Source: Ascidiella aspersa (lineage: Eukaryota). Taken from it: DNA of 64,000 bases. Where the stretch lies: the NCBI GenBank assembly GCA_963924565.1, contig OZ004612.1:15686001-15750000 (forward strand), in the 5' to 3' direction. Below, piece after piece: positions 7,073 through 48,872 of the stretch. Positions within the stretch are counted from its first letter, which is position 1. Every line of letters starts with the position of its first letter. Both the position numbers and the translations under genes were made by a program. The notes under the pieces were generated by a model that was not told where the DNA came from, did no database searches, and saw only the letters and a program-made list of their open reading frames with translations.

Positions 7073-10000
7073 TCAAGTCACGCGAAGTTTGTGCGCTTCT
7101 TTGACAAGCCGAAGGATTTTGTCATCATACTTCATAAATTTCATCTTGTCATCGATCCTTGCAAGTTGCACGTTTTTCGACCAAGTAGAGGAACCTGACC
7201 TAAAATCAGGTGGAAAGTTTTAATGAACAATACAAAATAAGAAGGGCGTAATTTTTCTCCTGTTGTATTGGAAAATAAATTCGCTGTTTTGTTGCTACCT
7301 TTTGCGCGCTGGCCCAGGCTGGCTATACTGTACAAACGTAGTACACAAAGTAGGTTAGCAGTTGATTTACCGCAAAAATACCGCGCCTCGTCTGCAAATT
7401 TCCATCTCCGTAGAAGATAGAATGTCATTGTCATCACGCCACAGCCAATCACAAGTCTCGTAAGTTGCATTCCAGAAATTTGCGACGTCTTGAAAGGTAA
7501 AACCTCTCAATTTCTGAAAAATATTGAAATCAATACAAACTCTGAAGGCCGAGCACGTTCTTTTCATCAGTTTTTATACTAACCTTCGAGTATAATTGTT
7601 TTTCTACTAAACGTCCTATTATAATTTAAGTTTCCAGGTTAATAAATGCTTTCACAAGTTTGACGTGTTACGTGATACTGTAATGCCATGATGTGTGGAA
7701 ATATGTATTTTTTATTGTACCTATCAATAGGCCTACACATTTTTTGGGGGGTTTGTTAAATACTTTTGGATACACTGAGGCTGCCCTATTAAAATAGCCT
7801 TGCTTTTTTTGCTAAGCAAGCTGTGATTTGTAACAAATGTTTTAAAAAAACCTATCTTGATGTTTGAGAGCCATTTTTTTAATTAAGCTATATACCTGAA
7901 AGTAAACATATTTCTTACGTATTTTTTCTTCAGAATTGAAATTACGTCGATCGTAAGATTCCCGTCGTTAGTTGGTGACGCAAAATATATGTCACCCAAT
8001 TTGCAGCTGTCGCCATTTTTACTAGCGATGGCTTGAGCGATATCTTCTGGAGTTAACTTGAGTATGACATTACACATTTCTAGCCTTCCTTTAGAGCCCC
8101 AGGGCTGTTCGGCCAAGCATCTTGAAAATATAGTTTTGCATTTTTACGTGTTAAACATTTCACCCTGTTCTATCTGTCTGCAACAGGGATTTTTATAGTC
8201 GAGGGCCAAAGCTAAATTTAGAAAGGTTTCGGCTGGCCTTAATACATTTTGCTAACACATTTTTAGGTAAAACGTGCAGTTTAGGCCTTCTATGTTTTAA
8301 CAACTGTCAAGTACACCTAATTGTTTTTTTTTGCAATTGAAAATGGGTCTATTGCATTTAAGAAGGGAGTGAATCTTGGGTTTGTTAATTTTAAAATTTG
8401 GGTCGTCATCCATAATCACAAAGAAAAGCTGTAATAAAAGTATTTGAGGAAATTTCCATTGTTGAAACCAACTTTCTTTACTCAACTGTATCTACTGAGG
8501 CTTTAGCTGGAAAGATTCCCTCAAAACACAAGCATGTAGGCTATATATCGTTCGAATGCGCGAAAAAGGCGTTTACGTATAGGCTATAATAAAAATATTC
8601 ATACAAAATATGGGGAACGGCCTAGTGCTCAGAGCGGATCGGATGATATTTATTGGATCCGGCCCGCAAGCTGTAAGCTGCCGAGCCCTGTTGCACAAGG
8701 ATGCTTTTACTGTTGACATATTATGACAAAGTTGGAAAGGCCACTATAGTTACGCATTATTTAAAATTAGACTGCGTTATAGTCACTTTTTATTGTTTTC
8801 TGCGATTTAGGCCTTCATTGACAAAACATATCATCCTAAGATCAGTACATTGTATACGGCCAGGGAAGAGTCTCCATTTTTTATCTTTTCGTGGGGCTCC
8901 AGAAATTTCTTCAAACAAAAGGAGCCTAAGTATGTTTCTATTTTAGTGGTCCAACTAACTATTTGTTTTATATATTTGTATAAAATATTAAGATGTTTAA
9001 CATCTGTAAAAGGGAATATTTTTAGATTTAAAACGCATAACTTTTTGTACCACCTCCTCATCCAATCTTTCTTGTCGAACCTCCAATGAACACTTAAGTA
9101 TGGTCTCCCCCCGATAACTGTCCGGACAAATTCTTCAACCATATTGCGGATATGATTTGGCGTTGTTGTGAAACGAATCACCTCGCTGTAGAGCTGGAGG
9201 TCGTTAATCTTTTTTGGGTCTGCGTACAACAAGACAAAAAGCCTACCCTTTGTATTCCTGTAAACATTTTACGGGTCAATTTAATTGTTCGATTCGCTAA
9301 AATAGTTACATTTTATTTTACAAACTTATCGTAGCCTACTCATTTAAATGCTTAATTTTTTGTCAATTGTTGAAGACCGAAGAAAATTAATATACTAGTT
9401 TACATTTTCAAGCAAACATACTGTAAAAACATTAATCTAACTTTTGGCTGTTGGCATATAGCTCAGTAATTTACGCATTGCTTGTCAGAGGCCCAGAAAG
9501 AAATATGTTGCCCAATAAAACAGCATTGCAAAAAGTATTTCAAACTTAGAGGAGTCTCTTCGGCTAAAAAATACTATAAGATCGAGTAAAATGTGTAGGC
9601 CTACAGCACACAAAGGAATACATATGAATTACAGGAATACATATTAATTACATAGTTCATTTTACATGACACCGTTCTGTAAAACTTGTATTTGCACTAC
9701 CTATACGAAAACAATGTGTTGTTGTGGCTGGTGCACGTCGCAGTGAAGTTAAAACTTTGGACTTGACCCTGCCTTAGCGTGCGCAGAGCTCACAATAAAC
9801 ATTATTTTCCAGTAAACATGTAGGGCATTCAGCAATTTATAAGGGTAATATGTTGTATGAACAAATGAACGAACAAACAAAAATGAAAGAGTTTGCCAAT
9901 TAGCTTTGCAAGTTGTGCTTTGTAGAACGGCTTTTAAGGTTGGCCGTACCGTACTTCACTTGTTATTTTATGTTCTTCTACACATATATATGTGCTCGCA

Positions 10001-11098
10001 TAGGCTACGTCTACCCTCGCATTGGTTTATTGGTTATTGCCGCCAATCCATCAAATATAATAGTCGCAGTCATGACTATTCACAGGTAGCAAATTCGGCG
10101 GATATCACAAAATAAGACCAATGTACACTGTTACTTATAAGTAATAACCGAAACATTGGTAGCTATCTGTACTTACCAATACTTTTAGGAAATTTAGAAT
10201 TCGGAGTTTTTGATCCTATTTTCAAGTTGGAGAATTCGTACGGATGAATCGCGCATCTTTCCTTCAAAAATAATGACACTAATGTTATTGTGCTGAAATT
10301 TTAGGGCTACCACAGTCTAATTTTTCCCCAAAACAGGACAAAACTTTGCCCTAAAATTACAGTGAAATTTTTTTAGCATATAATGATTTCATCACCTCTT
10401 TTAGAACAATCTCAGGCATATCCTGACATAAAAAAAAATTAATGAAAATAATTACACAAGAAGATGCTATTTTTGATTTAATAGGCTTTATGCCGAAATG
10501 TCACACATTAGCATATATTTGTTAAAATGATAAACAACAAAACGCAAAATGCATAGTGTCCTCGGACGAGCATTCGTTTATCTTACTGCAGCCCTATGAT
10601 ATACTATCACTTATGGCTCGCGTTAATGCAAGATGCCATTGAACGTAAAAATATTTTGTCTTGCAGTGTTCAACTTTGCTCATGAAAATTAGAATCTATT
10701 AATCTCAAAATTACATTATTGGTTTCCGTACGTCTAAAACTGATCTGTCATCCAAATATCCTTCTGAAAAAATGGAATGTGGTGTGAGTAGCAGCTACTT
10801 CAAACGACACACTTTAACTTTAGATGTATACTAGTGTAAAAACTATTTTAGACCACAAAGCAAAAGTATTTCTCACCTCACTGTTGTAGAGTTCGTGTAT
10901 ATTTTCGGGACCGAACTCTACGAAGTTGTGTTTGGGGTTTAAAGATAGGTGACGTGGGTATTCGATTACATCGGGTATGTTGTTCTGTAAAAATATTTAC
11001 TGCATTGTAGGTCTTAATCAAAAGTTTCAAAGATTTGCCGGAATTGCAGATAGAGACTCATCCACTGCACTTCTAACAATCTAACTACTTGTTATCGA

Positions 11099-11136
<38 letters not shown>

Positions 11137-14096
11137 TTGGTTGCTGGATCGCCGACTGCATTTGACTCCAATATTTTACCAAACTGTGGGTGAAATATAA
11201 AGCCATGTCTCATATTAATTAAATTCGCACTAACAAGAATGATGTCTTAAGTTTTGTTCACTTACCAAAAGTTCATTGAAAAAATAATTTAGTCATCAAA
11301 GCTTCTCTGTTATACTTAAGCATATTATTTGGATCGACGCGAAAAAAGGTTGGAAACACGGGCCTACTGTTACGATCACTTATACTACTCGGAAATCGAT
11401 AAGACCGCAAAATAAATGCAAAAAGGTCTAATCGGTGACAGTAGGGGTCGGCAAGCCCTTCATCCGGCCCGCCGCCTCTTTGAGGCATTTTACACAAATC
11501 AATCAATTTCACATACATTTTAACTACTTAAGTTTAAAAAAAGGGACAAACGAAAACTTATTCACAAATATTTTTTAAATATATATTTGTATATTTTCGG
11601 CAATGTAATGAAAACTTGCAAGAATTTTAAAAGAATTGAAAGAAATGCCGCTACACCAAAAATAAATCGTGTGCCCCTCGTTTAAAAACGTTACACACAC
11701 TAAGCTAGATTAACTTGAAATGTTATGGCGTTCCCTCAAAGTAGTTTTATTACACTTTGACAACGTGTAAACTCGAATTTCAAACCAAACAAACGCTTTT
11801 TTATGCGCTTTGCGTCAACACTTTAGTACCTCCTTATATATAATTATACACGTTTTTAAGTTCAAAAAAGGCTCGAGGCCCGCCTGATTTACATTTGTTC
11901 TAACATTTTAATAACACAATTCTTAGTATACACTTTGTGCGGCCCGCAGGGACCTTTCTGAGTTTGGTTTTGGCCCGCGACTGGAAAAAGGTTGCCGACC
12001 CCTGGGTTATGAGCTTCAGATTTTTTGTCCTATGTTACAGGATAATGGGTTTGATGGTATCATTTTTCAATATTACGGGCATCTTCAGCGACTATCATTT
12101 AGCTGTAGTGCTATACCAACGACAACGTAAAGGGGTACCGCAAAAATTTTACAGTTCAGATAAAACAGCAAAATTCGACCAACACAAGTGCGATTTGTGT
12201 TTCACATTTTTTATGTAGGCTATACAAACTGGCGATATACCTTATACACACTCCATATCACGTTGTTTAATGCTTGCGTTTTAACATTTAACCTATAATA
12301 TTTTAAAATTGACTTCTTATTAGCCTTTTTTTGTAGGCCTATGCAAGCATGAAAATACTACTTCTTAACTCTTTTCTTAATGCAATTTTTTCGTTTTTTT
12401 ATAATCCCAATTTCATACTGAAAATTATGTTGTTGCCGAAACGTTTGAAAAAAAAAATATATATATATATTTTACGCAATGTTCGGAATTTATGTTTGTA
12501 TTGATATTACAAATAAACTTGTTATTGTCATTACAAAACAAATTATAACTTTTTGTTATTTTTACCCACATATGGACTGGTCCCTTCCTGCGCTTTGAGT
12601 CCAAAAACAAGGCAAATGTTGAACTGAAGAACATTCAGATCAAGAAGTGGCACAACTTTTTAGCAACAAACTATTTTATTTTTATTTAGCTCAAGCGAGC
12701 GAAATCAAAGTCTGATTGGAAATTGCTTTACATACAGCCCTTACAGTTTGACCACGTGCAGCTTGCACCTTTGGCGCAATCAGTTTTAACACACGTTAGT
12801 AAAAATGTTTGTCCTTGTTAGTATCAGGAAAAAATATTCGAAGGTGCCTCATAATGCTATCAGTGCCAGGCCCGACAGCGCACGCAAGGCGGCCTGATAA
12901 ACAAATTATTCTTTACAATAGCATAAACTTTGGTGTCTTGCCAAATTCTATCGAACTATTTTGTCTCCTACAGTATAACCTTTTTAACGAACATTTATTT
13001 TCCGAAGCTAGTACATTTTTCCATAAGTTACCTTGTTTGGAAATATTTCCATTTCTGTGTCGCGCTCAATGTTCCTGTACTGTGTTCTCGTCATTTCTTT
13101 CACGCGGAAGACGGCGTCCAACTTACCATTACAGCTTTGGCGAAATTTTTGTTGCGTCACAACGGGAATAAGGTGTTGCAAATAGTTTAAGTCGATTCTG
13201 TGTTGTGAAGACACCGAGTCTCCTTCAGATTGACTGTTGAAAAAAATAATACTAACTTGATGAATGCCGTTTACCAAACTTGTCGAAAAATGTTTCTAAA
13301 TGTGATGCTACGCCTAATTTATTTTTTGATAGTTGAATTCCCTCCAAATAAAAAGGTATAAAATTTCATGATTGTATAAAAATGCCAACTGCTTCTACCC
13401 GGTATAGTATGAAACGAAGCTAGATTGTTGCATTCTCTGATAAAGGCATCACCAATTCTAGGAGCGTTAGGTTCTAAAATGTTTTAAATTAGAGGAAAAC
13501 AAACAGACCCTAAACAATAAACAGTTATTTAACTTCACAGCTAATATCTAACTGCATTGTAAAAACGTTTTCGGGCGTACGTTATCCCGTGTGTAGACAC
13601 TAATTCGGTCGCCTTACTCGTGCACTCTGTGCTTGAAGAACTTCGGAATGACGATTGTCCGATTTAGTCGAATTGCGATCAAGATAGACTTCCGAAGTCC
13701 AACCAGCTGGTTGTTGGGTCCGTTGATTAGAATGGGCAGTAAAAATCTGTCTCTGTTCAAATTTATCATAGGTTTTATTCCGGTTTTAAAGCTCGAAACA
13801 GATATCGGACACGCCTTTTGTTTTTTAGCCCATACTGTGAAATTTCGCCGTCGAGATTTTGGCACCGCCGCCGACTTGTTGATGGTTGAAACAACGCCAG
13901 GTTGACGATTCGACTGTTCGCTCGTTATGCCAGAAACCAAGATTTCTACTCGCCTTTCACTGCGTCTCGTGTTCCTTTTCATGAAAACGACGTACAGTCC
14001 CAGAAAAAGTGCGGCTACCTTTGCTAGGTTTTGTAATCTTTTTCCAGAAAAAAATCTTCGGAATAATTTCGAGGAAGCTGCCTTTTTAAAGCTCAT
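7073..14096 (-). CDS. O-fucosyltransferase-family (GT-B, PF10250-like) type II membrane glycosyltransferase, paralog A, 8 exons, 503 aa
   Basis: Exons 14096-13618, 13233-13032, 10984-10877, 10261-10177, 9219-9054, 8120-7919, 7513-7371, 7199-7073. All introns GT-AG and in frame (1512 nt). N-terminal anchor VAALFLGLYVVFM. Motifs INGPNNQLVG, YLSVHWRFDKKDW, IYFASP, EMEICRRGAVFLRSGSSTWS. Confidence 0.9.
11102..11131. repeat. (AT)n microsatellite in intron 2 of paralog A
   Basis: About 15 uninterrupted AT units. Confidence 0.95.
11442..12004. mobile_element. hAT-type MITE in intron 2 of paralog A
   Basis: TIRs TAGGGGTCGGCAA / TTGCCGACCCCTG with subterminal GGCCCGC motifs. TSD poorly preserved. 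Confidence 0.7.
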
Positions 14097-15243
14097 CTTC
14101 TGCGGATTATAGGTCGACTATGGAAGACTCTGTTACAGCAACTTTGAATCTTCTCTCAATCTGTCTTCGTTGCATATAGCGATAGACTATTTGAGAACAT
14201 ATGGCACGTGTGATAATATATACCACACCGTTTAAGCTATAGTCTATAAAGCTGAATAAACAGGTTTGTGATGTGGTTAGTAGTGCTTTTAAGACTCTTT
14301 AGGGTTAATTTATAGATTTATTAAAAAAAGAATTTAAAGCATAAAGCGTTTTACTCACACACAACTAAAAGCAACAGCCCTTCGTCGTCAGATATTTAAA
14401 CTAAACAGGCTTGATCTCTGCCTGATTTGTCGCTCCACATTTTACAAAGACTCGAAGTCAATTATACGATGTGTAAGCTGTTATCCACGTATAGAAATTG
14501 TTTTTAACATATTTATCTAATCCATTTAACCGGCTTTCAAATAGAGTTGAGACGTTTCAACTGCCCGAGGCGATCACGTATATAAACTGATCTAACAGCA
14601 ACCTTATGGAAAGCCTACACTAGTCACGGCAAGTACAAGCTTGCGGTCGCTTTCGAAATTGATGACATGACATTGTTGTTCAGTAACAAAAACAGATGTT
14701 TTTTGACAAAACTGTGACGTACATAGTAAAATGGTAAACAAAACAAAAATGTTTATATCCGTCTTAGATTAGATAACCACCCGTGGTTTTATTAGCGTGC
14801 TTGATTTAATTTATTGCACATTAACGACTTTTGATATAATTAATCTTAAAACAGTTGTTCCAATCTTTGCTTTCCAGTTTTGGAAAACCTACGCGACCCG
14901 CAATCTTGGTGTAGCCTACTAAAGATAAACATAATCCAATCATACGCAATCTGGCAAAGTATTTACAAATCTAGAAAGATTGTTTAAAAATTTGGTCAGA
15001 AAGTCCTGATTTACCCCAAATGCAGTATAATTAACTAAAGTTACGGTTTAAGGTTTTTGCATCAGAATGACTTTTTATCCCATAGTTCAGAAGAAGAATG
15101 CATTGTGCCTTTAAGACGTGGAACAATGAAAAAAGAAGTGAACCAGTCATGTGTATGATGTCACCAATACTTTTGGTTTCAATCAATGGCCGAAGCATAT
15201 AGCTCCAGCCTTGTCTAACGTAAACTACTTCATCACCGAAGAC

Positions 15244-20420: not shown

Positions 20421-23152
20421 TCATTCGGAATCTGTTTGTTTTTCACTTTCAGCTTTTGCTTCCATGACAAGTTCGTAAATACCTTCATCCAAGGATACAT
20501 GAGATCCGGGATGGTAACGCGAAAGAGCGACGTTGTTCGACCATGTCGATGCCGGGGATCTTAAAATAACGATCTTAAAATAGACGCAAAATAAAAGTAG
20601 GACTAACAGTTAGAAATTAAAACAACGGTAATAAAGTAATTAAAATACACCGAGATGAAACAATGGAGCAACCTTAGAAAGACTAGTGCACGTGAACAAA
20701 TTTCCATTTCAGTTGAAGAAAGAAGATCATTAACGTCACTCCATAACCAATCACATGACTCGTATCTTTCGTTCCACAACTCCATTAAGTCACACGTGTA
20801 ATACATTTTTATATTCTGCGAATAAAATAACTGTGGCTTTAAATATTATGTACACTTCAAGGGAACTACACGACATCAGTGTGATGACTATATACATACG
20901 TATTGGTAATATAGAGAAAAAAAATGTTAAGTTACGTGTTTCAGTATAAGGTGTTGTTTGACTTGGTGTAGAAGTTCTTTTTGCGAGGGAGGCGACGCAA
21001 CGTACACGTCGTTCACTTCAACGCCTTTCATCTTTGTGGCTATTCCGTCAGCAATATGGGATGGCTTTAAATGCTGGACGTTGTCGCACATTTCCATACG
21101 CACCTTTGGGGCATTCTCGTTGGTGCAACTGCAATTTGAAGAATGAAAAACATGCAACCCGAAAAAGTTAAGCAGCTTGGTATTTGATAAATTAATAAAA
21201 TGCATTTTTTATAACAACTGTGACATCGGTGGTGTACTGTTAATTTTAATCGTAGCGTGACCACAACAATTTAAGGGTTGAATTATATATAATTTGTAAG
21301 CCGCTAGCTATACAAGTGCGATATGTAACATTTCACATGTTCGACAAGCACTGCCACAATTAGAACTATAATGGAACATATTTTCAGGGTTCGGAAAAAT
21401 AATGTAATTGTAATATGTAAAAAATACGCAAAAGACAAATTGTCGTACCTTTTCATCCAATCCTCTTTATTAAACCTCCAATGCACACTCAAGTATTTAT
21501 GATTGTTGAGAAACCTTTGCAGGAATTCGCTCGCCATAAATTTTATGTGATTAGGAAAACCAGTGTATCGAATGATTTCGGAGAACAGTTTGGTATCGCT
21601 CAATGACGGTAATTCTATCAATACACGATGCAATTATATAAAGTGACACAACGATAATAATACATAAAGGAACTAAATAATGTTGTATACTAACTAATCA
21701 CATTCACCTTGAGCGTTTGGCTTATTTTCGTTTGGCATTATTTCCCTAATACGTAAACTGGTGAACTGAAAAGGGTGAACTGCACAATTTCCCTGTAGAT
21801 TCGATAAAATCAAAGTATATGTTACTTTTGACATGTTAAAAAAGTTATTGGGACACAAGTATGTTAGTATAATTGATGGGTAATTCAAGTTAAATAAAAC
21901 TTAGAGCTACACCAAATTGTAAAAAATATTGGCATTTCCGTTTTGGTGTACAGCACTGAATACAGATTTGTTTCGAATACTTACGTTACTGTCATAAGCC
22001 GACGTTACATCTTGCGAACGAAGTTGTATTGCATCAGAATTTGATCTTGGGAAAGTGATTGGATATTCAGCGACGTTTTCGTTGAGCTGTCGAGTTATCT
22101 GTGACAGTAAAGTTTTTTAACTATTTGATGCTCACGTTTTTTAATTATACGTAAATTAGTGTAATGGCAATTTCAGTGTATCAAATGATGAATGTGCAAA
22201 GTAAACTTCACCGCAATAGAATTAATCCAAATACAAAAACACGTTTGCTGTTTACCTTGCTTATCAGGGTGATGTTGGTTTCACGCTCGATCCTTTGATA
22301 AGCCCGCTTGGACATAATTCTGGTCCGAAATATAGAATCTGCTGTGTTAGAGCATTTTTTTCTATATTCGTCAATATTAATGGTAGGAAGCAATTGGCTT
22401 AATTGGTTTTGATCCACTCGATGCCAAGCATTAATTTCCCTGCAGAATTGTTTAATATAAGGAAGTTAAAGTGGTATTTTTTTACTTTTAATAAATTTGC
22501 TGGAAAATTGTGTAACAAATAAAAAAATTCGCTTTTTCTTAATAGCCTATTGAATTTATCAAGTTATGAAAATCCTAGTGATCTTTTTGTACAGTTTTCC
22601 GTTAACAAAACGCGGTGGCAAATCATAACAATAATTTTTATTAATTTGATTTATATTTGTACGATTTTTAGGTCCCTATTCATTGTAAAATATGGTCAAA
22701 AAACAATAATTTCATTCTATAAATAACAAATTTTAGTCTACAAACAAACTAAATATGCTGAAAATTGATTCTATAACTTACTCGCCGGTTTTGTGTTTAA
22801 AAAACCTTGGTATGGCAATTGTTCGGTTTAGTTTTATAGCAATAAAAATTGATTTTCTGAATCCGACAAGTTGGTTGTTGGGGCCGTTTATTAAAACCGG
22901 TAACAAAAACTTGCCTCTGTGCAAGCTTAGCAGCGGTTTAATGTTTGGTTTTATTGTTTTCTCCCATATTACTGGGCATCGATTTTCGCCAGCATGTTGG
23001 GTCATAGAAACTTTGATTGCAGCTTTTGGGCTTTTTCTTTTGAAATACACTGCTTTGTCTTCCTTCTTTTTAACGAAGAAGATCACCACAGAGGTAATTG
23101 CTAACATATAAAAAATAGGCAACACTCTTATTTTGGCAGTTTTAAGCCTCAT
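20421..23152 (-). CDS. O-fucosyltransferase-family type II membrane glycosyltransferase, paralog B, 8 exons, 464 aa
   Basis: Exons 23152-22782, 22439-22256, 22098-21985, 21792-21708, 21614-21449, 21128-20936, 20815-20673, 20559-20421. GT-AG and in frame (1395 nt). Motifs INGPNNQLVG, YLSVHWRFNKEDW, VYVASPP, EMEICSRALVFLRSPASTWS. Confidence 0.92.
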
Positions 23153-30500: not shown

Positions 30501-33500
30501 CAGCAACTTCGGCATAAAAAACAGTTCGGAGTAAGACCAAAATAGGACTAATACCTAATACTCGTAATAGCGTTAAAATCGAAATAAGGCCTTTGCTACC
30601 TTTTACTTAACCCCAAACCGGCACCCAAACGTCGACACCAAAACGGACGATGCCAAGAATATGTCCTTTAATCGTCCCATACCCTGTTTTTTTACAGTTT
30701 TGGGCGTTATTTTGTCTATTTAGGTTTTTTCCGTTACATTTTGGATTTATTCCGAGTTAGACGTTGTTGCTTTTGGGGCTTATTCTGTGTTTCCATCGAA
30801 CTTTAACTAACATACCGTGTGATTTCATAATTTACAACATGAAAGGCCTATTTCATTTATTTTCTTTCTCTTTAGGCATGTCTTATTGAGCACATCGTAT
30901 TTTATAGCAGGGCTGTGGAGTCGGGAGTCATATTTGGGACTCGACGTACCGTAATCGATTTGTTTTGCTGAAATCGAACTGATGGAGTCCCGAGTTCGAC
31001 GTGCACAGTACCATAATGCCGCCAAAATGCAAGTTAAAAAGGCGAAATAGCATATGGTGGATATTTTCCAGCAATGTATTGTGGTTGGATGAAATATATG
31101 ACACCCCTATGAGGGGATTGTTGAAAATCCACCTTAATTTAGTTACGTAAATGGGAAAAATAAATGCTGTAGGGTTGCAGACGGACTTGGAATTTGACGA
31201 AATCACACATTTGGCCGGAATCTGACTCTGGAGTTGGAGTCGGGTTATTTTTATCCGACTCCGCAAGCTGCTTTATAGATAATAGAATTGGGAGCCTGAT
31301 GTAATAAAAACTGCCAGCAAAAAACAAAGTATCCAAACAAAGTTAGCAGTCGACTCGCTCGTCAGGTGCGCCGCCAAGTTTTGAAAGGTTTACAAGTGCG
31401 CCCTGGGGTGAAAAAGGTTGAGAAACACTGGTTTAATAAAAGAGAAAGTGCTAATACTGTTAATTGTTTGAAAATACTGTTCATTGTTACGTCAAACACT
31501 ACCAGGTTGAAGGCTTTTTAATCATTTTGTTTTCGCTTTTGAAGAGTTTTTGCGTGTTGAGTTCTGTTTTATAAGGCTCAGTTAAAAACTTTTACCCAGC
31601 ATTAGGGTTGTTAAGAATGAACTTTTTTTTGAAAAATTATGTTTTCGGCTTGATTTCCCATATGTGTTACATAAAAATCAGTTTCATAAGTTTACAAAAC
31701 AATTGGACAAGATTTAGGGGCTCCGCAGACACTCGAAAATTACAGCACTGAAATTGCTAAAATCTGGGACTTCCCTTAATACGATACTGTACGTTTTTCT
31801 TTACAAACACAGAAGCCTTGTAATTTTTATATTAAACAATGTCAAGAAAGCATTACTAATCTATTTTCCAGTTTTATATAATTTAAAATGTATTCTTAAA
31901 GCCCCCAAATCCATACTCCACCCCATTTTTAGAGATTTTTGACGTCATTTTTGAGTGTTTTTAAGGTCCCTGATCTGGAATTGGCCACTGAAACCGCGGT
32001 AAATTTGTCAGAAATTCCGCGTTTCAAAATATGGCAACCCTAGGTTAGGCTGGGTTAAAAACAGTTACATCCTTTGTATTAATGAACTTGCCTAGAAATA
32101 AGTTGCTGTTACGCTTAATGTTTTTTGATTTTGAAACAAGGTGGGGCGCGAGTTTGGTTAAAATTGTAAAAAGGGGGCGTGTCTCAAAAAGTATAAGAAC
32201 CACTGGTCTATAGTCTATTATAGTACTGTATGCCCCTTAACAACCAAAGACACAAGTTTTTTCAATAATCAAATTTTGATAGCTAATTTTGTAGCTAATT
32301 TGTTTTTAATCATTCTTAGGGTCCTTATCAATGCGAGCATAAATTAACACTTCCGAATTATACGCGCCATTGCAATATTTAAGTCAGAGCAAAAAAGCAC
32401 CTTATTATAACAAGTTTTTAGGTGCATGAATAAAAACAATGGGAAGCTTTTCATTGACTTCACTAGGAGATAAAACTATTGCGTCACAACTTCAAACGTC
32501 ATGCTTTCTTGTAATGAATATTTAATTGCAGTAAAACATTGTTTGTTATTAGAAAAGTATAATCATACTAATGACCGTCTTGCTCATGCCACTGGATAAA
32601 TAAAAAGAAGGTCATTAATTACACTTTGCAAAAACAAAAAAACTGTATACCTATTGACGAAGGAGTCCTCCCTATAGGTTTTTTGGCACGTATCCGTAGG
32701 TTTGTGAAGTGAAAAGGATGGACCGCACATCTTTTCTGAAATAAACGAATATATTTAAATTGCCCTTATAATGTGATAAATTATTAGTTACTTGATAATA
32801 AATTTCAAAGCCAAAAAGGTCGAGTAGATCGACAGCATCTTGATTAAGACGTTTCGATACGATGTTAGTTACTTGGTAGAAACTTATATTTAGGTTAATA
32901 TATCAATAAAATATCTTTGCAGATTAATTACGTTTGTGCTGTACATTTCCAGTATGGCTGCTGAATCAAATATAAGCATTCCATTCCCTTGTTTGTGTTG
33001 TGTTTTGTCTATCGGATATTCAATGATATTATCGAACAGATCTCCTGTCGACTGTAATGATGAACATTTTTAATGAACAGAAGAAATTCGAAAACGTTTT
33101 TAACGAGGTTTAAAAAAAACGTTAGGACAAGGGTATTATACATAAAACAATTTTCCGAACTGCCTGAGGTTGATGTACTTATTCAACAAAACAAATTCTT
33201 AAATGTAGACTGTTTGAATTGGTCTTACTTCATCCACTAAAGTTATTTTTATTTCCTGTTCAACTCTCTTATATGCACGATAAGACATTATTCTTGTTAG
33301 CAAGATAGCATCTGCTGTGTTTGCGCATTTCTTTCTGTATTCCTCCATGCTGATTATAGGGAGTAAGTGAGCCAGTTGATTGAGGTCAACCCGATGCCAA
33401 GCACTTATGTCGCTGAAACAACAAATTAAGATACTTTTGTTTAATATTATAATCAGTGGGTTAACCAGCAAAGGTTACTGCTATTTTGTTTATTGTTACT

Positions 33501-35223
33501 TCTCCATTGGTTTAAATTTAACTTTTTATTTGTTTTTGTCCCAGAATGGTACAGTACGTTTAAATCTATCCCTATTTACCATCTCAGGGTTTAATTTGGA
33601 TACCGGCAAATGTTATAACTTTACGAGGTTACATGTTTTATATATTAAATGATAGACAGCTGACAGGAAACAAACATATATAAACTGTTGCCACCAGGAA
33701 TAGTAATACGCTATTAATCCAAACATAGCTCTTCTGGTAATTGTAATTCTATACAAACTTTTCGGCAACCTATGCAAATCGCCTTCGTCAGGGTAAGCAA
33801 ACATGTATTATCACATTTTAGATGTTTAAAATATTTGTAATAAGTAAACCATAGGTGCAATCAACCTATAAAAAATTGCTCTGCAGCAGTTACACTGTAG
33901 TATAAAAGAGTGTTCAGTTTACCGAATCTGAATTTTAAATGGGTTGATCTGAATTCTGTCAAATGATTTTTTCCTTGTTAATTAAAATCACGACATATAC
34001 ACTTTAATTAGTTCGCGTGATAAATAAATATTAAAATAACATATAAGATTTCGGAGTCCTCCTGTAGGACGTGACAAAAATGTTAAAACAAGCACCGCTT
34101 TGCAGCATATGTTCCAAACTTACCTTCCGATTCTATGTTTGAAGAATCTTGGGACAACTATCGTTCGGTTAAGTTCAATTGCAATATAAATCGCTTTCCT
34201 AAACCCCACGAGTTGATTATTTGGGCCGTTTATTAGAGTAGGAAGGAGGAACTTTTCACGGTCTATATTTAACAAAGGCGTGAGATTTTGATTTAGTTCA
34301 GTATTCCACTTTACTGGGCATTTATTGGATTTTCCAGATTTAGCCTTTTCGTTAGTTACATAATTATTTGTTGTTGTCGGTTGTGTTAATTCTTTTTTGT
34401 CACTGTACTCTGATTGTTTCTTGGTTGGTTTCTGAACAGGTAACTTAGTTGTTGTTGTCGGTTGTATGAATTCTTTTTTGCCACTGTGCTCTGATTGTTT
34501 CTTGGTTGGTTTCTGAACAGGTAACTTATTTGCTGTTGTCGGTTGTATGAATTCTTTTTTGCCACTGTGCTCTGATTGTTTCTTGGTTGGTTTCTGAACA
34601 GGTAACTTAGTTGTTGTTGTCGGTTGTATGAATTCTTTTTTGCCACTGTGCTCTGATTGTTTCTTGGTTGGTTTCTGAACAGGTAACTTAGTTGTTGTTG
34701 TCGGTTGTATGAATTTTTTTTTGCCACTGTGCTCTGATTGTTTCTTGGTTGGTTTCTGAACAGGTAACTTATTTGCTGTTGTCGGTTGTAAGAATTCTTT
34801 TTTGCCACTGTACTCTGATTTTTTCTTGGTTGGTTTCTGAACAAGTAACTTCGTTTCTTTATCAAACAGTTTTTGCTTCGGTTTATTTTTAGTATTAGAC
34901 GCGTTGTTTGTTGTCTTAACTTTCTTCGTTTCGAAGTGTTTCGCTGAATCTTTTTTGCTATTAATCCGTTCTGGTTTCATAGCCGAATCATCTTTTTGCG
35001 TCACTTGTTTTGTTATACTACCTTCGAGTTTTGGAGTCAAGTAATTCCATTGCTTAAAAGACGGTTTCAATGTATTTCCTTTCGAGTGTTTTGGCACATA
35101 GATATTCCACTGTCGTTCACCTTGTGTGCTGTGAGAAAGTTTCGTGTAATATAAAAATGTAAAGATTGTGACCAAACAGAATACTGGAAGAATTTTTCCC
35201 CAGAAAGTCTTCGCAAATGTCAT
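27532..35223 (-). CDS. O-fucosyltransferase-family type II membrane glycosyltransferase, paralog C with repeat-expanded stem, 8 exons, 708 aa
   Basis: ATG at 35223 (the ORF-track start at 35247 is GTG). Exons 35223-34124, 33412-33229, 33051-32932, 32735-32651, 28802-28637, 28482-28290, 28046-27904, 27667-27532. In frame (2127 nt). Motifs INGPNNQLVG, YLGVHWRYNKEDW, VYVASPP, EMEICSRALVFLRSAASTWS. Confidence 0.92.
28941..29291. mobile_element. hAT-type MITE, GAGTCGG-rich family, copy 1 (intron 4 of paralog C)
   Basis: TIRs TAGGGCTGCGTAGT / ACTCCGCAGTCCTG. Perfect TSD TTTCAAAC at 28933-28940 and 29292-29299. Confidence 0.9.
30221..31430. mobile_element. hAT (Charlie-like) MITE, middle layer of the nested stack
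   Basis: TIRs CAGCGTTTCTCAACC / GGTTGAGAAACACTG. Perfect TSD GTTTAATA at 30213-30220 and 31431-31438. Confidence 0.9.
30908..31270. mobile_element. hAT-type MITE, GAGTCGG-rich family, copy 2 (inner layer)
   Basis: TIRs CAGGGCTGTGGAGTCGG / CCGACTCCGCAAGCTG. TSD TTTTATAG / CTTTATAG. Colinear with 28941-29291. Confidence 0.87.
34366..34851 (-). repeat. Coding minisatellite: 6 x 81 bp (27 aa) in the stem of paralog C
   Basis: Unit KLPVQKPTKKQSEHSGKKEFIQPTTTT occurs six times in frame with few substitutions. Confidence 0.97.
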
Positions 35224-41763: not shown

Positions 41764-44700
41764 TCAACTTCTTGCTGACACTTGAGCTTGGACTAAATCA
41801 AAAATTGCTTCATCCAACAAAGTATATTTAGGAGGAACTATTTGTTCGGTGCGCTCCAGAATCACGTTGTTTGACCAACTCGAAGCACCAGATCTAGAAT
41901 GTAAAACATACTTCGGTGTAAACAAATTACTGTTATATATTTCAGTTGATGTTTTACAGGATTCCAGTGTGATTAAAAAAGTGGCGTTATTTTTTATTAC
42001 AAGACACAAAAAGCTTTACAGGGAATATATCGGAAAGATATTGGGGTTACTGCAGAGGTTTGCACTACTTAACAAAACAAATACTTTCTGTTTCCTGCCA
42101 TTAACAAAACTTTGGTTCACACTGTAGTCGAACAATTTACCTACCTTAAAAATATTAGACCTCTTGTGCATATGGCCATCTCTGCGGATGATACAAATTC
42201 ACCAACATCCTTCCATATCCAACCACATGACTTGTAGCGACTCTTCCAGAACGTTATGACGTCATCGGCAGTGAAAAGGGTTACACTCTATAAAAAGTAA
42301 ATTACCATAACTACGTCTCGAGAATATAATTGGCTCCTGTTTCGTTTTTACAAATTGTTTTATAATTAGTGGTTTTCAATTTAAGTTGCGTTCACATTTA
42401 TAGGAGTCGTAGGCTACAAAACCAAATTACCCTTTGGTGCAATTGATCAACACAGGGCTCCCAGCCGGGAGACGGGCATGCGAACGTTTTTCGCACAATG
42501 TTCGCAAAAATGTGCAAAAAATGTGCGCAATTTTTTCAGAATCTTATTTTTTATTTTATTCTTTTAGAATCTTATTTAATACATTTTGAGATAGGTAATG
42601 CGGGCATAATTTAATGCATATTTTACTGTTTTTCTCTTATTCTCCATCAATTGTTCTCGTCTTATTTTTGGTCGCTAAATCTTCTTCTCTAACTCTTCCC
42701 GCCTCCAACGATTTTTCTCGACTTTTCCATTAAGTTCTTCCTTTGAATTATTTTTTAAATATTCTTCCAACTCCTCCTCGAACGTTTTCTTAATTCTTTC
42801 TGGACTCTGCGTCGGGCTCTCTTTCTTTGACTTATTCTTTGAATCTACCTCCAACTATGCCTCTAATCCTCCTCCAACTCTTCCTTTAACTATTCCTCAA
42901 ACTCTTTCACCCACCCTGACTCCCGACCTTCCTCCAAACTCCCACTCTAAATATAACTCTAATTCCTCCAACACTGACTCTTTTCAACTCTTTCCATTCT
43001 CTCGAAAATAAAAACTAGTTATTATTTAAAGTAAAAATTTATTCCAAAGAGGTTAATTTACTTTCCGTTGGCAACAGGGTACGTGGCAAATGCCTTGATA
43101 AATGTGCACACTTTTCCAGAATGTCTGAATTAACATTTTGAAAAAAGTGCGCACTTTTTTAAAGTATAAAATTTGCGCACCTTCTGTAAAAATGGCGCAC
43201 ATTTTTAAGGCATTTTAAAATGAAGGCACATTTCGTGTTCACATTTTTGCGCACATTGTGCAAAAAACGCCACGTCTCCTGTTTCATATTTCCCAAAAAG
43301 CACTAAATAAATCATGTTAATCTTTTTACTGTTGCAAAGCAACCACAAAGTCATCGGATTTCAATAACTGATTTTATACACGATTTAAGTGCTTCGCTGC
43401 AGTATTATTTCACATTTTTACAAGTGGCCAAAACCTGTCTTTGCTTTTAAACCAATTTTACAAAATTAACATGTTAAAACATAAGGGCAGATTTTATCTT
43501 TTAATCCTACGAGGGTGTAAATTGGAGAACAAATTTGAATACCCTTGGTTTATAGCAACAAAATATTTTACGAAGTTAATACCTAAAGTAGTCACCAACA
43601 CATGTATAACGAAATACTTACATACTGTTCTTTAAGAATTGCACCAACTTCCAAAATCAACTTTGCTTCCATTGGAGGTGAGGCAATGTACACGTCACTA
43701 ATTGCCTGAGCGCTGCTCCGTATTTTCTCGTGCACTGCCGCCGCTATGTCTTTTGCTTGAAAAGTGTCGATGGTTTTGCACATATCCATAAACTCTTTTT
43801 TAACGCTCGCTCCTGGTCGAGAACACCTGTGCAAGCAGATTTGATTAGTACGGCGGTTGTAAACCTGTGGGTTATTACCGCCTAAGGCGTAATTTGACTC
43901 TTTTATGGGTGTACTTCAACATTGATTTGGGATTTTTGGCCGTTAAAAGACCCAAAAGTATGAAAAAATAAAAACAACGAAATTTAAACAAGGCCATTGT
44001 CGGAATAAAACATAAAATTTGGAACAAGACCCAGATAGGCCGACAACCTAATGGTCGAAATAGGGTATCAATCGGAATAAGACTTATGTCCATAAGAATA
44101 AATGGCTGGAACAAGTTCTAAACCCTGACCTCAGTCCTAACCTTATCCTTATCCTTACCCATCAACTTTAACCCAGGAAGTCGAACCGGAACTTTATGAA
44201 CCGGTTTTGGGCCAGTTTTAATCGAACCTGGACCGTTTTTTGTAAGATTTTAATTAGCTGAACCGGAACGGAACCGAATATTTTAAATGAATTTTAACCT
44301 TAAGCGAACCCAAACTTGTGAAGAAAGCGGTATACTTCCGCATGACCTCTAATTTTAAATATACAGAAGTTATGTCATGTTCGAAATTTTAAGAAAAAAT
44401 GAATTTGCAAAACGTTGATTTTTAGTATTTGAATGATGAACTTCTTGTTTCTTTAATGTCACGAAACTTAGGTTACAGACAAGTTACAATTTAATAATTA
44501 TTCTCTACATTTATTGAATCACATATTTAGATGTAACGCATCTCATATTTTATCCGAACCGGAACTTTATTAACCGGTTTTAAAAATATAATGGGTCAAC
44601 CACAGCTAAATTGTAACTTTTAAATTTGTTCGAATCGAAACCGGAACTGAATCGAATTCCGAAAAAATCTTTGAACCTGAACCGGAAAAGTTTAAGGGTT

Positions 44701-47700
44701 CGACTCCGTGCTTTATCCCAGCATGATTTACCTTGGTCTATTCTTGTAAATGTAAACTATACTCATTTTCTATTAAATGATTGGAATAATATCTATTAAT
44801 GTGAAGTCATAATAACAATAATAAAATTATTGATTAGGAAGAAAGTTAAGCTTTCATATAGCCAAGCCAACATTAATCGAATTTTAAGTTACTTTTATGG
44901 TTTGTGCGTAGAAAGTGACGATTAAAAAACATTACTTGTGCAAGTCGCAAACATTTAAAAAAAAAATGGCGTTAAAACGTTAACCAAAGAATCGTAATTA
45001 ATCTTGCCGTGACATCCAATCATCCTTGTCGTATCGCCAATGTACACTTATGAAGGGTCGACGTTTCATGACCTCATCGATAAAAGTGGTAGCCAAAGTT
45101 ACAATGTGCTTCGGTACGGGCGTGAATCGAACCACCTCACTGTAAAGGTCTTCATCGTTGGTAGCTCGAAGATCTAAAGTAAGATAATTACAATAAAAAA
45201 CTTTACGCTACTCCTTTCTGTAGCATTTAAAATAAGACTTGCCTAAAATTTGTAATTTACTCAGTATACTCACCAATATGTTGCGGTCTCGAATCTTTCG
45301 GTCGAATTTCTCGAACTTTTAGATGGGAGAAATGAAACGGATGAACAGCGCACCGCGCCTTTAAATACCAAATAAATTACGTAATAAATAGTAACAAAAC
45401 GATGTTAGTTACTAAAGTAATTTATGTGTTTTATACAAGTTGGTTCTATTTTTGTATAAATATGTCCCAGACAAGTTTTGCTATTATGTTTGTATAGGCC
45501 TTAGGCGTTCAATAAATAATATTCCAAAATAGACGTTACGTCGAAAAAGCCAGTCAATGTCACTTATATTGTTGAGTTACTTGCAACCATGCAATCTATG
45601 GCGTACTGCGGGTAGAACCCAAACTTGTTCATCGGCAGTTACTCGGTAACCTTTAGTTCATGACATCATTAGCAACAGTCTATTGTTATATATTTTTTAC
45701 AAAATCATATCCGAACAACATACCGCATGGTCGTACAGCTGCTTGATTGCCGCTTTCGATTTTTCGATTTCTATAAAGGGCTTGCCAACAATAGGTTTTA
45801 GTTCTTTTGGAAGCTCAATGAGTGGTACAGATTTCTATGATTAAAAAAGGAACAGCTTTTTTGGATTATATTACATTTGATTTGTAGTTACACTACTGTT
45901 TGATTACTCAATACTAGGATTCTCAAACTTTTTTAGCTTGCGACACAGCAAAAAATTAACAAAATATTTGCGTCACTCTTTTTACAAAACAACAATTTGA
46001 TAACTTAAGAAATTTCCTTTAAGTGAAAAGACATTCAATAATAGGCAAATGCCTCTCCAAAATGATAGTGTGCATTTAGGTTTTCCATGCTTGCTTGCAT
46101 GTGTGTTTCTACATAGGCCTTATAGGTGATTTTCTAAATTAACGAAAAAAGTTATACTAGGAAGCAGGGGCGCCCGCAAAAAATTTTCCAGTTGGGGGCA
46201 ATCAGGGGAAAATCGAAAAGGGGGTCCTGAATTTTCAACTTAGGGAATTCCCCTATTTTTCGTCTGACTTAATGAATAATGACGTCATAAAACAGTGACA
46301 GTATAACGTCATAGAATGGTGATTGCAAGACGTGATAAAAAAAATAATCAGAAACAGCCAAATACGTCCAGCAAAAGCGACCACGTGCGTCGTCAACAAT
46401 CCTGTCAGGCGCCAGCTGCAAAACACGGTAACTTCAGGCAAAAAAAAAACAAATTGTAGAATACACACTTGCTAATCAGTCAACCTAAATAAATAACGAA
46501 AAAGAACAACTTTCCAGCGTTTACGGTCGACGAAAAACGGCGTTTTGCACTCGATTTTGGTTTTGCATTAGATTAAGACGCGTGACCCAATTACTTTAAA
46601 AGCACGCCGCTTCGAACAATTTTTTAAAACATGACAAAAACGAACAAAAAACGATAATATAACTTACAAAAAGAGGGTAAGAACTCCCGCCCCCCTGGAT
46701 ACGCCCCTGGGGGCAATGGATAAAGTATAATATTTTTAACCTTCATATACATATTACACTTATAAATAATTGTAATAATCGCATGTTGAAATTCCAGGGG
46801 GGGGCAAGTGCCCCCCCCCCCCTTTCCCCCCCGTGCGGGCGCCCATGCTATAGTGCAGGGCTACTCAATTGGCGGACCGCGGTCCGAATGCGGACCTTTT
46901 CAATGTCGAATCCGGACCTTATCTGTCTCATTATTTATTTAGCAAAGCGATTTGATTATTTTTTTCTTGGCAAACAATTGCTGCTGTTCATTGAAAACCC
47001 CTTTCTATATTAACGGCACGACAGAATTCTCAGTTGAAGCGAAGGACTTATGCCGTATTACATTTTGTATGACTGTAAATTATTTCATAAGAGTTATAAC
47101 AGACCTAAGCAGATTTTAAATTTTTGTGATTGGACCTTTGTTAATAATAGTTGAGTAGCCCTGCTATAGTGTGTCGAGGCACACAGTTTGACAATCCCTG
47201 ACAATCGCCCTATACGTTCATAGACTATAAAACAAATTTGGCTTTAAGGTAGGCCTCAAAACGAAACTTCACAAAACGGTTTAGGATAGTTACTGCAAAT
47301 CGGATCTAAATCGGAACTTTTGAATTTCTTCGATTTCCTAAACAAATACCATAATTATGTGAACGATTTACTAAATTACATTTGTGACGATGTTCATTCC
47401 AGTCTGAAGTTGCATCCTTCGATATTTCGCAAGTGTTATTTCTTCCAGTCGGAGAACGACCTCGACATTCTCATTACAACGTTCTCGGAACTGATCAAGC
47501 GTCACAATTGGGATCAGCTTTTGGAGCGACGTCAGGTCAACACGGTGCCATGAATCCACCGTGTTTCTAGAATAAAATGAGAGCTTTTTTACGATGATGT
47601 ACAATATTTTTTATAAAGTTATAAGGGAAATTAGAAAACCAAGAATTATGTCCAGCATCATACTATAGTGATTCCCGGCCAACATACTTTTCACGAAAAG

Positions 47701-48872
47701 AAAACCAAACGAAACAAAAAAAATTCGCAGGAAGCTAAATACTCGTCAGTAAAATCAACTTCTCCGTATGTTTGACGTTCCCTCTATAAAGCAATCGAGT
47801 AGTCGCGTTGCAGCATTAAAGACCAGTTTTGCCACAGTCTGCAACAGCTTTAGTATAAAACTTAAACCGCGAACGAATTCGCTGTCTTCAAAATGTTGCC
47901 TCATTTCTTTGTGACACTTTAGGCGCGAACAGATTATATTATATTTTATAGCATTCATTTTTTCTAGCTTGGACCATGCTTTGAATAAGATGCAAAAAAT
48001 ATATGCTGGTATTTTTGTAATTCCAATGTTGGAATGTAAAAATTGGATCGCGAAGTCAAAAGAGTTTGGAACCTTTTTTATACAGGGTAGACATTTCAGG
48101 GTAGACAAATATAAAGTTCGGTAAACAGACAAATATTCTTTAGCCTTCCCGTCTTAATCAAGGCTAGTCATTTATAAGAGAAATAAATTTCAGTGTCTCG
48201 AAAAAAACAAAAAACAAAACAATTCATCCAAACACATTAACAGGTTGGTAGAAATTAAAAGTAAAACTAAGAATGAGCATCAAAAGCAGTATACATGGCG
48301 TGAGAGGTATACAGACTTGTTTTGTAGTGTTTTTTACTAAAAAATTGAAATATTTGCCGACACGACATTCATAATAAAGTAGCCTACGGGCACAACGCTT
48401 TTTAATTTTGTACTACAATTTGGGAATCAACTTACGATTGCGCACCATGCGTGAAGAACCGGGGTACAACGATAGTCCTGTTGAGGTAAATAGCAATGTA
48501 GATCGACTTTCGAAAACCAACCAACTGATTATTTGGTCCGTTTATCAAAACCGGTAGCATAAACCTATCTCGATTTAAGTTTATTAGCGGACGAACGTTC
48601 TTTAAATAGGTCTTTCGGACCTTAATAGGGCATGTGGGCGCCACAATCGCTTCGTTTACTGTTGTACTTGCAAAGGTTTGGAGAACTTGAATTTTTTTTG
48701 GCAGCTCAAGTTGATTTTCTGAATGGACTTCTGGGATTTCTTCGAACTTGTAAATAACCGTTTCATGTACGACGTGCCCCCTTCGCACAATTGAAACTAT
48801 AAGGAAAAGTACTATCGCTGATGCGACATACAGAAGGCGATTTAAAGTAATGCGCATCTTGCTGGTGAACAT
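41764..48872 (-). CDS. O-fucosyltransferase-family type II membrane glycosyltransferase, paralog D, 8 exons, ~487 aa
   Basis: ATG at 48872 (alternative 48857). Exons 48872-48436, 47566-47380, 45834-45724, 45358-45274, 45173-45008 (GC donor), 43826-43622, 42287-42145, 41893-41764. In frame (1464 nt). Motifs INGPNNQLVG, FISVHWRYDKDDW, VYIASPP, EMAICTRGLIFLRSGASSWS. Confidence 0.88.
42466..43281. mobile_element. Inverted-repeat element in intron 6 of paralog D with a pyrimidine-rich core
   Basis: GGAGACG..GC..CGTTTTTCGCACAATGTTCGCAAAAATGTG at the left versus CACATTTTTGCGCACATTGTGCAAAAAACGCCACGTCTCCTG at the right. TGCGCA-type subterminal repeats. No TSD found. Confidence 0.55.
44174..44710. mobile_element. 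hAT-type MITE, GAACCG-rich family, copy 3 (intron 5 of paralog D)
   Basis: TIRs CAGGAAGTCGAACC / GGTTCGACTCCGTG. TSD CTTTAACC / CTTTATCC. Confidence 0.88.
46165..46847. mobile_element. hAT-type MITE with GC-rich termini
   Basis: TIRs CAGGGGCGCCCGCA / TGCGGGCGCCCATG with GGGGGCAA subterminal motifs. TSD degenerate. Confidence 0.75.
46203..46709. mobile_element. hAT-type MITE nested in 46165-46847
   Basis: Ends CAGGGG.../...GGATACGCCCCTG. Perfect TSD GGGGCAAT at 46195-46202 and 46710-46717. Confidence 0.8.
46856..47163. mobile_element. hAT-type MITE (308 bp)
   Basis: Perfect 13-bp TIRs CAGGGCTACTCAA / TTGAGTAGCCCTG. Perfect TSD CTATAGTG at 46848-46855 and 47164-47171. Confidence 0.93.

Follow-up and report, generated by a model that had tools for sequence, protein, structure and literature searches.

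Four tandem genes of the ascidian Ascidiella aspersa code for predicted type II members of an uncharacterised, apparently tunicate-restricted clade of the GT-B fucosyltransferase superfamily

The GT-B fucosyltransferases of animals are well studied only through a few conserved single-copy enzymes, namely POFUT1, POFUT2 and FUT8. A stretch of 64,000 nucleotides from the ascidian Ascidiella aspersa (assembly GCA_963924565.1, contig OZ004612.1, positions 15,686,001 to 15,750,000; hereafter the window) raises the question of what else this superfamily might comprise in an animal. It holds four head-to-tail genes, g1 to g4, which an earlier note on the sequence had proposed to be membrane-anchored O-fucosyltransferase-family paralogues and, together, a candidate undescribed glycan-building system. 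Are these genes functional, where do they belong within the superfamily, and what might their products make? The reading we favour, at a probability of roughly 0.65, is that of a tandem array of four functional type II paralogues from a tunicate clade of the GT-B fucosyltransferase superfamily, which are putative sugar transferases of the secretory pathway.

We rebuilt the splice models from the window sequence. A listing of open reading frames (ORFs), combined with an all-against-all comparison of stop-to-stop pieces, gave seven coding blocks, each present in four copies. The gene g2, with canonical splice sites, was read first; the same frame and phase logic was then carried to g1, g3 and g4, and the poorly conserved exon 3 was placed by similarity. 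The four genes share the minus strand and have eight exons each (Table 1), with the intron phases 2,0,0,1,2,0,2 and with exons 4, 5 and 7 of 85, 166 and 143 nucleotides (nt) in every copy. Each joined coding sequence is a multiple of three, and its sole stop is the terminal one. The intact four-gene array of the earlier note was thereby recovered as described, down to its end coordinates: the g1 stop codon ends at 7073, and the g4 ATG starts with its A at 48872. The introns are of the GT-AG type in 27 of 28 cases, the exception being intron 5 of g4, where a GC donor is needed for the 166-nt exon 5; a GT located 6 nt upstream, also in frame, could serve as the donor instead and would result in an exon of 160 nt. 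No fifth copy or fragment was found in the window by tblastn. The window has about 35% GC and contains no N. The joined models were used in the translation checks, the BLAST and HMMER comparisons with fetched relatives, the alignment, the tree and the estimates of the ratio of nonsynonymous to synonymous substitution rates (dN/dS).

Several motifs are invariant across g1 to g4, as the earlier note had reported: LINGPNNQLVG, VHWR, Y-x-A-S-P and E-M-x-I-C-x-R...F-L-R-S-x-x-S-[ST]-W-S. Moreover, all 22 of the invariant or near-invariant residues of the wider family, including the catalytic-type Arg, are present in the four proteins. The further claim that these motifs correspond to the N-terminal NQ loop and motifs I to III of the superfamily was borne out in part. 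When the family profile was compared with the Protein Data Bank (PDB), the N-Q loop and the adjoining L-N-R-T-hydrophobic-P block aligned with POFUT1; the A-V-H-W-R-Y-D of motif I aligned with A-V-H-L-R-N-D of Caenorhabditis elegans POFUT1 and with the H-W-R of POFUT2; and the S-[ST]-W-S of motif III aligned with S-S-F-T in POFUT1 and S-T-F-T in POFUT2, with a Trp instead of the Phe. The correspondence breaks down at motif II: here the Y-x-A-S-P-P of the family lies opposite F-V-A-S-D-K of POFUT1, such that a Pro replaces the Asp (D309 of C. elegans POFUT1) and YxASP is not the equivalent of YxATD. The definitions and roles of these motifs, i.e., the Arg of H-x-R, the Asp of motif II and the S-T-F triad, follow PMC3522684, according to which plant PF10250 proteins keep HxR and do not strictly keep the GDP contacts of motifs II and III. 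A Pro at the motif-II position does not exclude membership in the superfamily.

Profile searches point in the same direction. Examined exon by exon against Pfam, the exon-5 pieces of g1 to g4 match positions ~147-191 of the O-FucT family (PF10250) with E-values from 4e-4 to 0.013 (g2 0.0014, g4 4e-4), below the threshold; exon 1 of g4 weakly matches positions 8-37 (E=0.17), and the other exons gave no match. Among ten full-length relatives, nine pass the curated PF10250 cut-off of 31.5 bits, scoring 33.9-62.6 bits across profile positions ~1-325, and the tenth scores 29.8. Against the PDB, the family profile matches only POFUT1 and POFUT2, with C. elegans POFUT1 at E=3.6e-10 (42.6 bits), C. 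elegans POFUT2 at E~5e-5 (25 bits), human and mouse POFUT1 at E~0.01 (18 bits) and human POFUT2 at E=0.08. Profiles of individual exons (A1 and A2) gave only chance matches in the PDB, such as P450, vanadium chloroperoxidase and DNMT3B.

We then considered the fold and the topology. The closest full-length relative, P0061 of Ciona intestinalis, is 42% identical to g1 over 392 aa. Its AlphaFold2 model, built on an alignment of 44 full-length relatives (A5), has a pLDDT of 81.9 and a pTM of 0.79, and displays an N-terminal transmembrane helix (residues 7-30), a disordered stem (31-98) and then an ordered catalytic domain. A Foldseek search of the PDB with this model placed POFUT1 first (E=7e-13; TM 0.61-0.64 on target length), followed by POFUT2 (1.5e-9), AtFUT1 of GT37 (2e-6), NodZ (5e-6) and FUT8 (1e-5), at identities of 8-14%; the matches listed, down to rank 49, all belong to these five enzymes. 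The prediction of a GT-B fold in the earlier note, put to structure prediction on this relative, thus holds, and the model places the P0061 family in the GT-B fucosyltransferase fold, outside the POFUT1 and POFUT2 orthogroups. Since even the nearest fold neighbours are only 9-14% identical, g1 to g4 are not orthologues of POFUT1 or POFUT2; the weak profile E-values (3.6e-10 to 0.08) and a topology wrong for either enzyme likewise rule out such orthology, in agreement with the earlier note. Taken together, the sequence matches and the modelled fold clearly point to g1 to g4 belonging to a GT-B fucosyltransferase clade that is uncharacterised and falls within Pfam O-FucT (PF10250).

Each of the four proteins has a single strong hydrophobic segment following a K/R-rich tail (aa 21-39 in g1, 10-28 in g2, 6-24 in g3 and 11-29 in g4), and no second comparable segment was found in any of them. 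The lumenal parts feature 7-8 cysteines and 2-5 N-glycosylation sequons per protein, and none of the four C-termini (RVT, DSE, GAH and ARS) is KDEL-like. The proteins are predicted to be type II membrane proteins with a short basic cytoplasmic tail, a signal anchor, a variable stem of low complexity and, in the lumen, a catalytic domain of ~400 aa with conserved cysteines, as the earlier note had proposed from the signal anchor and stem; this architecture is typical of Golgi glycosyltransferases and suggests residence in that compartment. The stem varies from ~30 aa in g2 to ~280 aa in g3, where it is rich in K (22%), T (14%), S (8%), Q (8%) and P (8%). It includes a tandem repeat in frame, with K/T/S/Q/P-rich units of 27 aa, through which the ORF stays open: a recent in-frame expansion, with g3 being ~220 aa longer than its sister g2.

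A HMMER scan of 1.84 billion representative proteins, made with a profile of the conserved exon-1 end (A1), recovered 379 representatives at E<=1e-3 and 143 at E<=1e-10, many of them exon-1-sized fragments, with 48 of the best 150 being at least 420 aa long. The highest identity of the window to any representative, 73%, is confined to exon-1 fragments, and its own species is thus absent from this set. The full-length relatives, the best of which are P0061 and P0021 of Styela clava, show 28-42% identity to each of the joined models in collinear alignments of ~380-450 aa, and a hidden Markov model (HMM) of the family built from A5 scores g1 to g4 at 396-441 bits (g1 441) across nearly the whole profile. 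The gene models are far more than chance ORFs because full-length relatives align with them collinearly and the family HMM scores them so highly. A word-indexed protein search with the conserved block of g3 exon 1 (region 296-366) gave no match, the annotation of the window's own species being evidently absent from the database searched; one with the A5 alignment found only four Ciona proteins and one with P0141 found 16 unnamed proteins.

All named members come from tunicates, namely Ciona intestinalis, C. savignyi, Styela clava and Phallusia mammillata, and without exception they are called 'uncharacterized' or carry domain-based automatic names. As judged from these sequences, the clade so far appears to be restricted to tunicates. 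The epithet 'undescribed', used earlier for the proposed system, is apt in that there is no characterised member and we found no description of this clade in tunicates in the literature; it goes too far in that homologues are already in the databases as uncharacterised or automatically named PF10250 ascidian proteins. The family is uncharacterised rather than unseen. The 16 unnamed proteins form a clade of their own, of which P0141 is found on marine metagenome contigs (L003, L004 and L005 from ENA, L004 being named TARA), amidst tightly packed, apparently intron-poor genes for PAX, homeodomain, PDZ-glutaredoxin, DnaJ and MFS proteins; by inference, these contigs look like the compact genome of an appendicularian-type pelagic tunicate. 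A pattern scan with A1 for bacterial or archaeal relatives, of limited sensitivity, gave 40 pattern matches and no confirmed one, and a bacterial origin of the clade finds no support.

In a maximum-likelihood tree of 49 full-length proteins, g1 to g4 form one clade (SH-aLRT 98), within which g2 and g3 are sisters (100). The sister group of this clade is a Ciona pair (90), and six Styela clava paralogues form a neighbouring clade. The Ciona genes, LOC108950428 and LOC108950429, are themselves adjacent and head-to-tail: on C. intestinalis AP043569.1 (L001) they occupy 10001-14514 (+) and 15400-19083 (+), are flanked by an adhesion-GPCR gene and an MFS transporter gene, and are accompanied by an inverted partial third copy at 3505-5028 (-), which matches exons of the second gene at 92-95% identity. 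Seven Styela members (P0021, P0025, P0028, P0029, P0030, P0038 and P0114) likewise lie on one 20-Mb record. Since the window, Ciona and Styela clades each have their own clusters, tandem birth-and-death expansion has proceeded independently in each ascidian lineage, and the earlier claim of a lineage-specific tandem expansion is upheld by both the tree and the Ciona pair. The intron alignment columns are identical in g1 to g4 and match the exon boundaries of two Ciona relatives, which places the eight-exon plan before the split from the Ciona lineage; the second Ciona gene (P0161) is without the intron between exons 4 and 5. Besides the subfamily of g1 to g4 there are at least four further tunicate subfamilies (at least five in all). 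One of these is intron-less (P0016 at 10001-11695 of L008, Ciona AP043580.1, and P0019 at 1112-2569 of L002), with the Ciona P0016 nested in a RhoGAP intron; this subfamily may therefore have begun as a retrogene.

Pairwise identity within the array is 35-57%, g2 and g3 being the most similar at 57%. For this pair dN/dS is 0.12; in the other five of the six pairs the synonymous sites are saturated, with the proteins still 35-42% identical. The ORFs have long been held open by selection, since they are intact in the face of saturated synonymous sites and of the low g2-g3 dN/dS, and the array is kept under purifying selection. The constraint is uneven along the proteins: mean pairwise identity reaches 52-55% in exons 5 and 7, column identity is 71% in the exon-1 block, and the lowest values are those of exon 3 (22%) and exon 2 (36%), both in the N-terminal domain. 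This pattern would fit a conserved donor site combined with diverged acceptor recognition, at which it hints only weakly.

Comparison with characterised enzymes helps to place these proteins. The best PDB match by both profile and fold is POFUT1 (GT65; C. elegans 3ZY2, human 5UX6, mouse 5KXH), with which they share the GT-B fold, the N-Q loop followed by L-N-R-T-hydrophobic-P, the H-x-R with its catalytic-type Arg and the C-terminal S-[ST]-aromatic triad. POFUT1 is a soluble, single-copy enzyme of the ER lumen with a C-terminal retention signal. In contrast, the products of g1 to g4, at 11-14% identity to it, have the motif-II Pro, a type II anchor and a stem of 30-280 aa without a KDEL-like tail, and their genes are multi-copy, tandem and apparently tunicate-restricted. 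POFUT2 (GT68; human 4AP5, C. elegans 5FOE/8AY1) comes second by fold (~1.5e-9) and profile (5e-5); it shares the H-W-R-type motif I and the C-terminal motif, and differs by its ~14% identity and by the same contrasts in topology and copy number. The N-terminal loop of POFUT2 has a catalytic Glu (E54 of human POFUT2), whereas that of g1 to g4, N-G-P-N-N-Q, is of the N-Q type seen in POFUT1 and plants, the HMM alignments to POFUT2 stopping short of the loop. According to the legend of Fig. S2 in PMC3522684, there are separate Ciona sequences within the GT68 tree of CAZy.

AtFUT1 (GT37), NodZ and FUT8 (GT23) are in the same fold class as P0061 (Foldseek E=2e-6 to 5e-5) and are weaker matches, with a TM of 0.32-0.36 on query length and 8-13% identity; the family profile did not match them in the PDB. 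The closest analogue, as regards architecture and the way the family evolves, is provided by the plant PF10250/DUF246 proteins (CAZy GT106: RRT, MSR, OFT1 and others), which also form large lineage-specific families, are Golgi type II proteins with a PF10250 domain, and have been implicated in the synthesis of extracellular polysaccharides. The plant proteins occur in plants and algae, whereas the names in the g1 to g4 clade are all tunicate, and the likeness is one of architecture. No bridging relatives between the two groups, prokaryotic or other, were found, and no GT106 structure is among the PDB matches listed by the profile search or Foldseek.

The array arose from an ancestral eight-exon gene by lineage-specific tandem duplication. 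By analogy with POFUT1 and POFUT2, we infer the following mechanism. The products of the array would be inverting enzymes of the secretory pathway, probably of the Golgi, which take the sugar from a GDP-beta-L-sugar and attach it to a hydroxyl group on a glycan or glycoprotein. The donor is most likely GDP-fucose, the default for the superfamily. The S-[ST]-W triad, together with the N-N-Q loop, would hold the nucleotide sugar, and the Arg of H-W-R would aid the departure of GDP, as does Arg240 in C. elegans POFUT1. The donor would be bound in the C-terminal domain, by the triad and this Arg, and the acceptor between the domains. The divergence of the paralogues, greatest in exons 2-3 and the stem, would then fit a diverged acceptor specificity.

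Certain observations weigh against this picture. The Asp of motif II that contacts GDP in POFUT1 is a Pro in the family; the relatives pass PF10250 narrowly (30-63 bits against a cut-off of 31.5); and the Pfam and fold evidence is transitive, reaching g1 to g4 by way of a relative 42% identical to g1. Likewise, residence in the Golgi is suggested by topology, expression of the four genes is presumed, and their donor and acceptor are proposed by analogy. Plant GT106 members use UDP-rhamnose. Indeed, a PF10250 domain need not mean fucose, and GDP-L-galactose (GDP-L-Gal) has been suggested as a donor (PMC3522684).

How do the alternatives fare? It is highly improbable that the genes are non-functional or non-catalytic, i.e., unexpressed recent duplicates or pseudo-enzymes that bind without transferring sugar. 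Such a state would agree with the missing Asp of motif II, but neutral decay would have broken the ORFs by the time synonymous sites had saturated, and all four are intact, on which ground pseudogenes are rejected; the g2-g3 dN/dS and the retention of every family-invariant residue, the catalytic-type Arg included, speak against it as well. Further, the contig of P0020, from the same sub-clade, is 1.57 kb long and intron-less and carries an AATAAA close to its 3' end, so that it looks like a spliced mRNA. If the proteins are enzymes, they might be protein O-fucosyltransferases of the POFUT type. They would then act, in the ER or at an early stage of secretion, on folded cysteine-rich modules on secreted proteins, and each paralogue would be adapted to a different domain type expanded in tunicates. 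That POFUT1 and POFUT2 are the nearest solved structures by sequence and fold, that the NQ...LNRT-hydrophobic-P block is close to that of POFUT1, and that UniProt automatically names two relatives 'Peptide-O-fucosyltransferase' and 'GDP-fucose protein O-fucosyltransferase 2' could be read in this way. Yet these names are domain-based and not experimental, the identity to either enzyme is just 9-14%, and a signal anchor with a stem takes the place of a cleaved signal peptide, with no KDEL-like signal. Canonical POFUTs are also single-copy and conserved, whereas g1 to g4 are multi-copy and fast-evolving, and we consider this alternative quite unlikely.

The donor, too, might be GDP-L-galactose or another L-sugar nucleotide, with the proteins being Golgi transferases that build the matrix polysaccharides of tunicates, analogous to plant GT106. 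In its fuller form, the clade would comprise Golgi alpha-L-glycosyltransferases that polymerise or branch the sulfated L-galactans of the tunic, or matrix glycans of L-fucose and L-galactose, from GDP-L-Gal or GDP-Fuc. We regard both forms as unlikely, though worth setting out. All named members are from tunicates, the family has expanded independently in several ascidians, the topology is of the Golgi type, and L-galactose is 6-hydroxy-L-fucose, GDP-L-Gal having already been proposed for PF10250 proteins (PMC3522684). Unusual sulfated alpha-L-galactans are ascribed to ascidian tunics in PMC3366676 (refs 44-45) and PMC8747265 (refs 21, 22, 52), which name no biosynthetic enzyme for them. Against this, the window has no other polysaccharide-pathway gene (sulfotransferase, epimerase or transporter), and unnamed relatives occur in appendicularian-looking plankton genomes. 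To our knowledge, L-galactans have not been described in appendicularians. Neither could the Ciona 'Fucosyltransferase-like' epidermal driver be tied to the family: the two primers of this ectoderm driver (PMC4945153) are absent, at up to 4 mismatches, from three Ciona family loci (the P0084 locus was left out). The link of g1 to g4 to tunic sulfated L-galactans is speculative, and an array of secretory-pathway sugar transferases, most likely using GDP-fucose, remains our preferred reading.

No other glycan-pathway genes were found in the 64-kb window, so what we have is a paralogue array and not a multi-part glycan system, a term by which the earlier note had overstated it. Beyond the 3' end of g1 lies a gene for a HAD hydrolase, whose ORFs match Hydrolase_6 (4648-5130, E=2.5e-19) and Hydrolase_like (6096-6308, E=1.3e-14). 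The space between g3 and g4 contains the remnant of a hAT-type transposase, with weak Pfam matches in the expected order and in different frames to zf-C17orf113 (E=0.0017), DUF4371 (E=0.023) and Dimer_Tnp_hAT (E=0.062). Upstream of g4, an intron-less ORF codes for a 340-aa multi-pass membrane protein, which matched nothing in Pfam at E<=0.01 and nothing in the PDB; the idea that it might be a nucleotide-sugar transporter was dropped accordingly, and it could be an orphan membrane protein resembling a receptor or a transporter. The local GC of this ORF is 0.42, and a short tandem repeat lies just downstream of it. A cluster of tandem repeats is also seen upstream of the HAD hydrolase gene. There were no tRNA or Rfam matches in the window.

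Table 1. Positions within the window of the four genes, their exons and the other features discussed
Feature	Position	Strand	Description
g1	7073..14096	-	503 aa, predicted type II O-FucT-superfamily glycosyltransferase
g1 exons	14096-13618, 13233-13032, 10984-10877, 10261-10177, 9219-9054, 8120-7919, 7513-7371, 7199-7073	-	479, 202, 108, 85, 166, 202, 143, 127 nt; all introns GT-AG
g2	20421..23152	-	464 aa, most compact copy
g2 exons	23152-22782, 22439-22256, 22098-21985, 21792-21708, 21614-21449, 21128-20936, 20815-20673, 20559-20421	-	371, 184, 114, 85, 166, 193, 143, 139 nt; direct reading of the sequence
g3	27532..35223	-	708 aa, long repetitive stem from exon 1
g3 exons	35223-34124, 33412-33229, 33051-32932, 32735-32651, 28802-28637, 28482-28290, 28046-27904, 27667-27532	-	1100, 184, 120, 85, 166, 193, 143, 136 nt
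g3 exon-1 tandem repeat	34364..34855	-	81 bp x 6.1; Tandem Repeats Finder, 95% matches, no indels, score 879
g4	41764..48872	-	487 aa
g4 exons	48872-48436, 47566-47380, 45834-45724, 45358-45274, 45173-45008, 43826-43622, 42287-42145, 41893-41764	-	437, 187, 111, 85, 166, 205, 143, 130 nt
g4 intron 5 GC donor	45006..45007	-	junction CG/GCAAGA, intron from 45007
HDHD2-like HAD hydrolase gene	4648-6308	+	at least two exons
Decayed hAT-type transposase	38480-40192	+	local GC 0.43 vs ~0.35
Intron-less 340-aa membrane ORF	50995-52017	-	~6-7 hydrophobic segments, N-terminal N-G-T sequon
Tandem repeat by the 340-aa ORF	50816-50902		27 bp x 3.2
Tandem-repeat cluster	980-3770		44 bp x 3.8 at 980-1143; 20 bp x 2.3 at 2254-2300; 6/11-bp array at 2639-2717; 22 bp x 5.1 at 3658-3770

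What do these genes mean for the biology of tunicates and of the superfamily? The clade of g1 to g4 is apparently an uncharacterised, tunicate-restricted variant of a known enzyme superfamily: a deeply divergent branch with the traits of plant Golgi cell-wall enzymes, namely the membrane anchor, the stem and tandem birth-and-death expansion. By present evidence this branch, which has no characterised member, is found only in tunicates, the only animals to make a tunic of polysaccharide. Ascidians contain unusual polymers of L-sugars, first described in 1987, and the family, including tractable Ciona genes, offers a candidate gene set for the question of which enzymes make them. It also serves a second question, namely the extent to which PF10250 proteins have drifted apart in donor and acceptor specificity. 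Should the proteins prove to be ordinary fucosyltransferases that modify the glycans of glycoproteins, this would be a routine lineage-specific glycosyltransferase expansion; if the L-galactan reading is true, they would be the animal equivalent of the GT106 enzymes of plant cell walls and would belong to the tunicate innovation of an external polysaccharide coat. The main interest of the array thus lies in the concrete set of candidates that it provides for tunicate-specific glycan biosynthesis.

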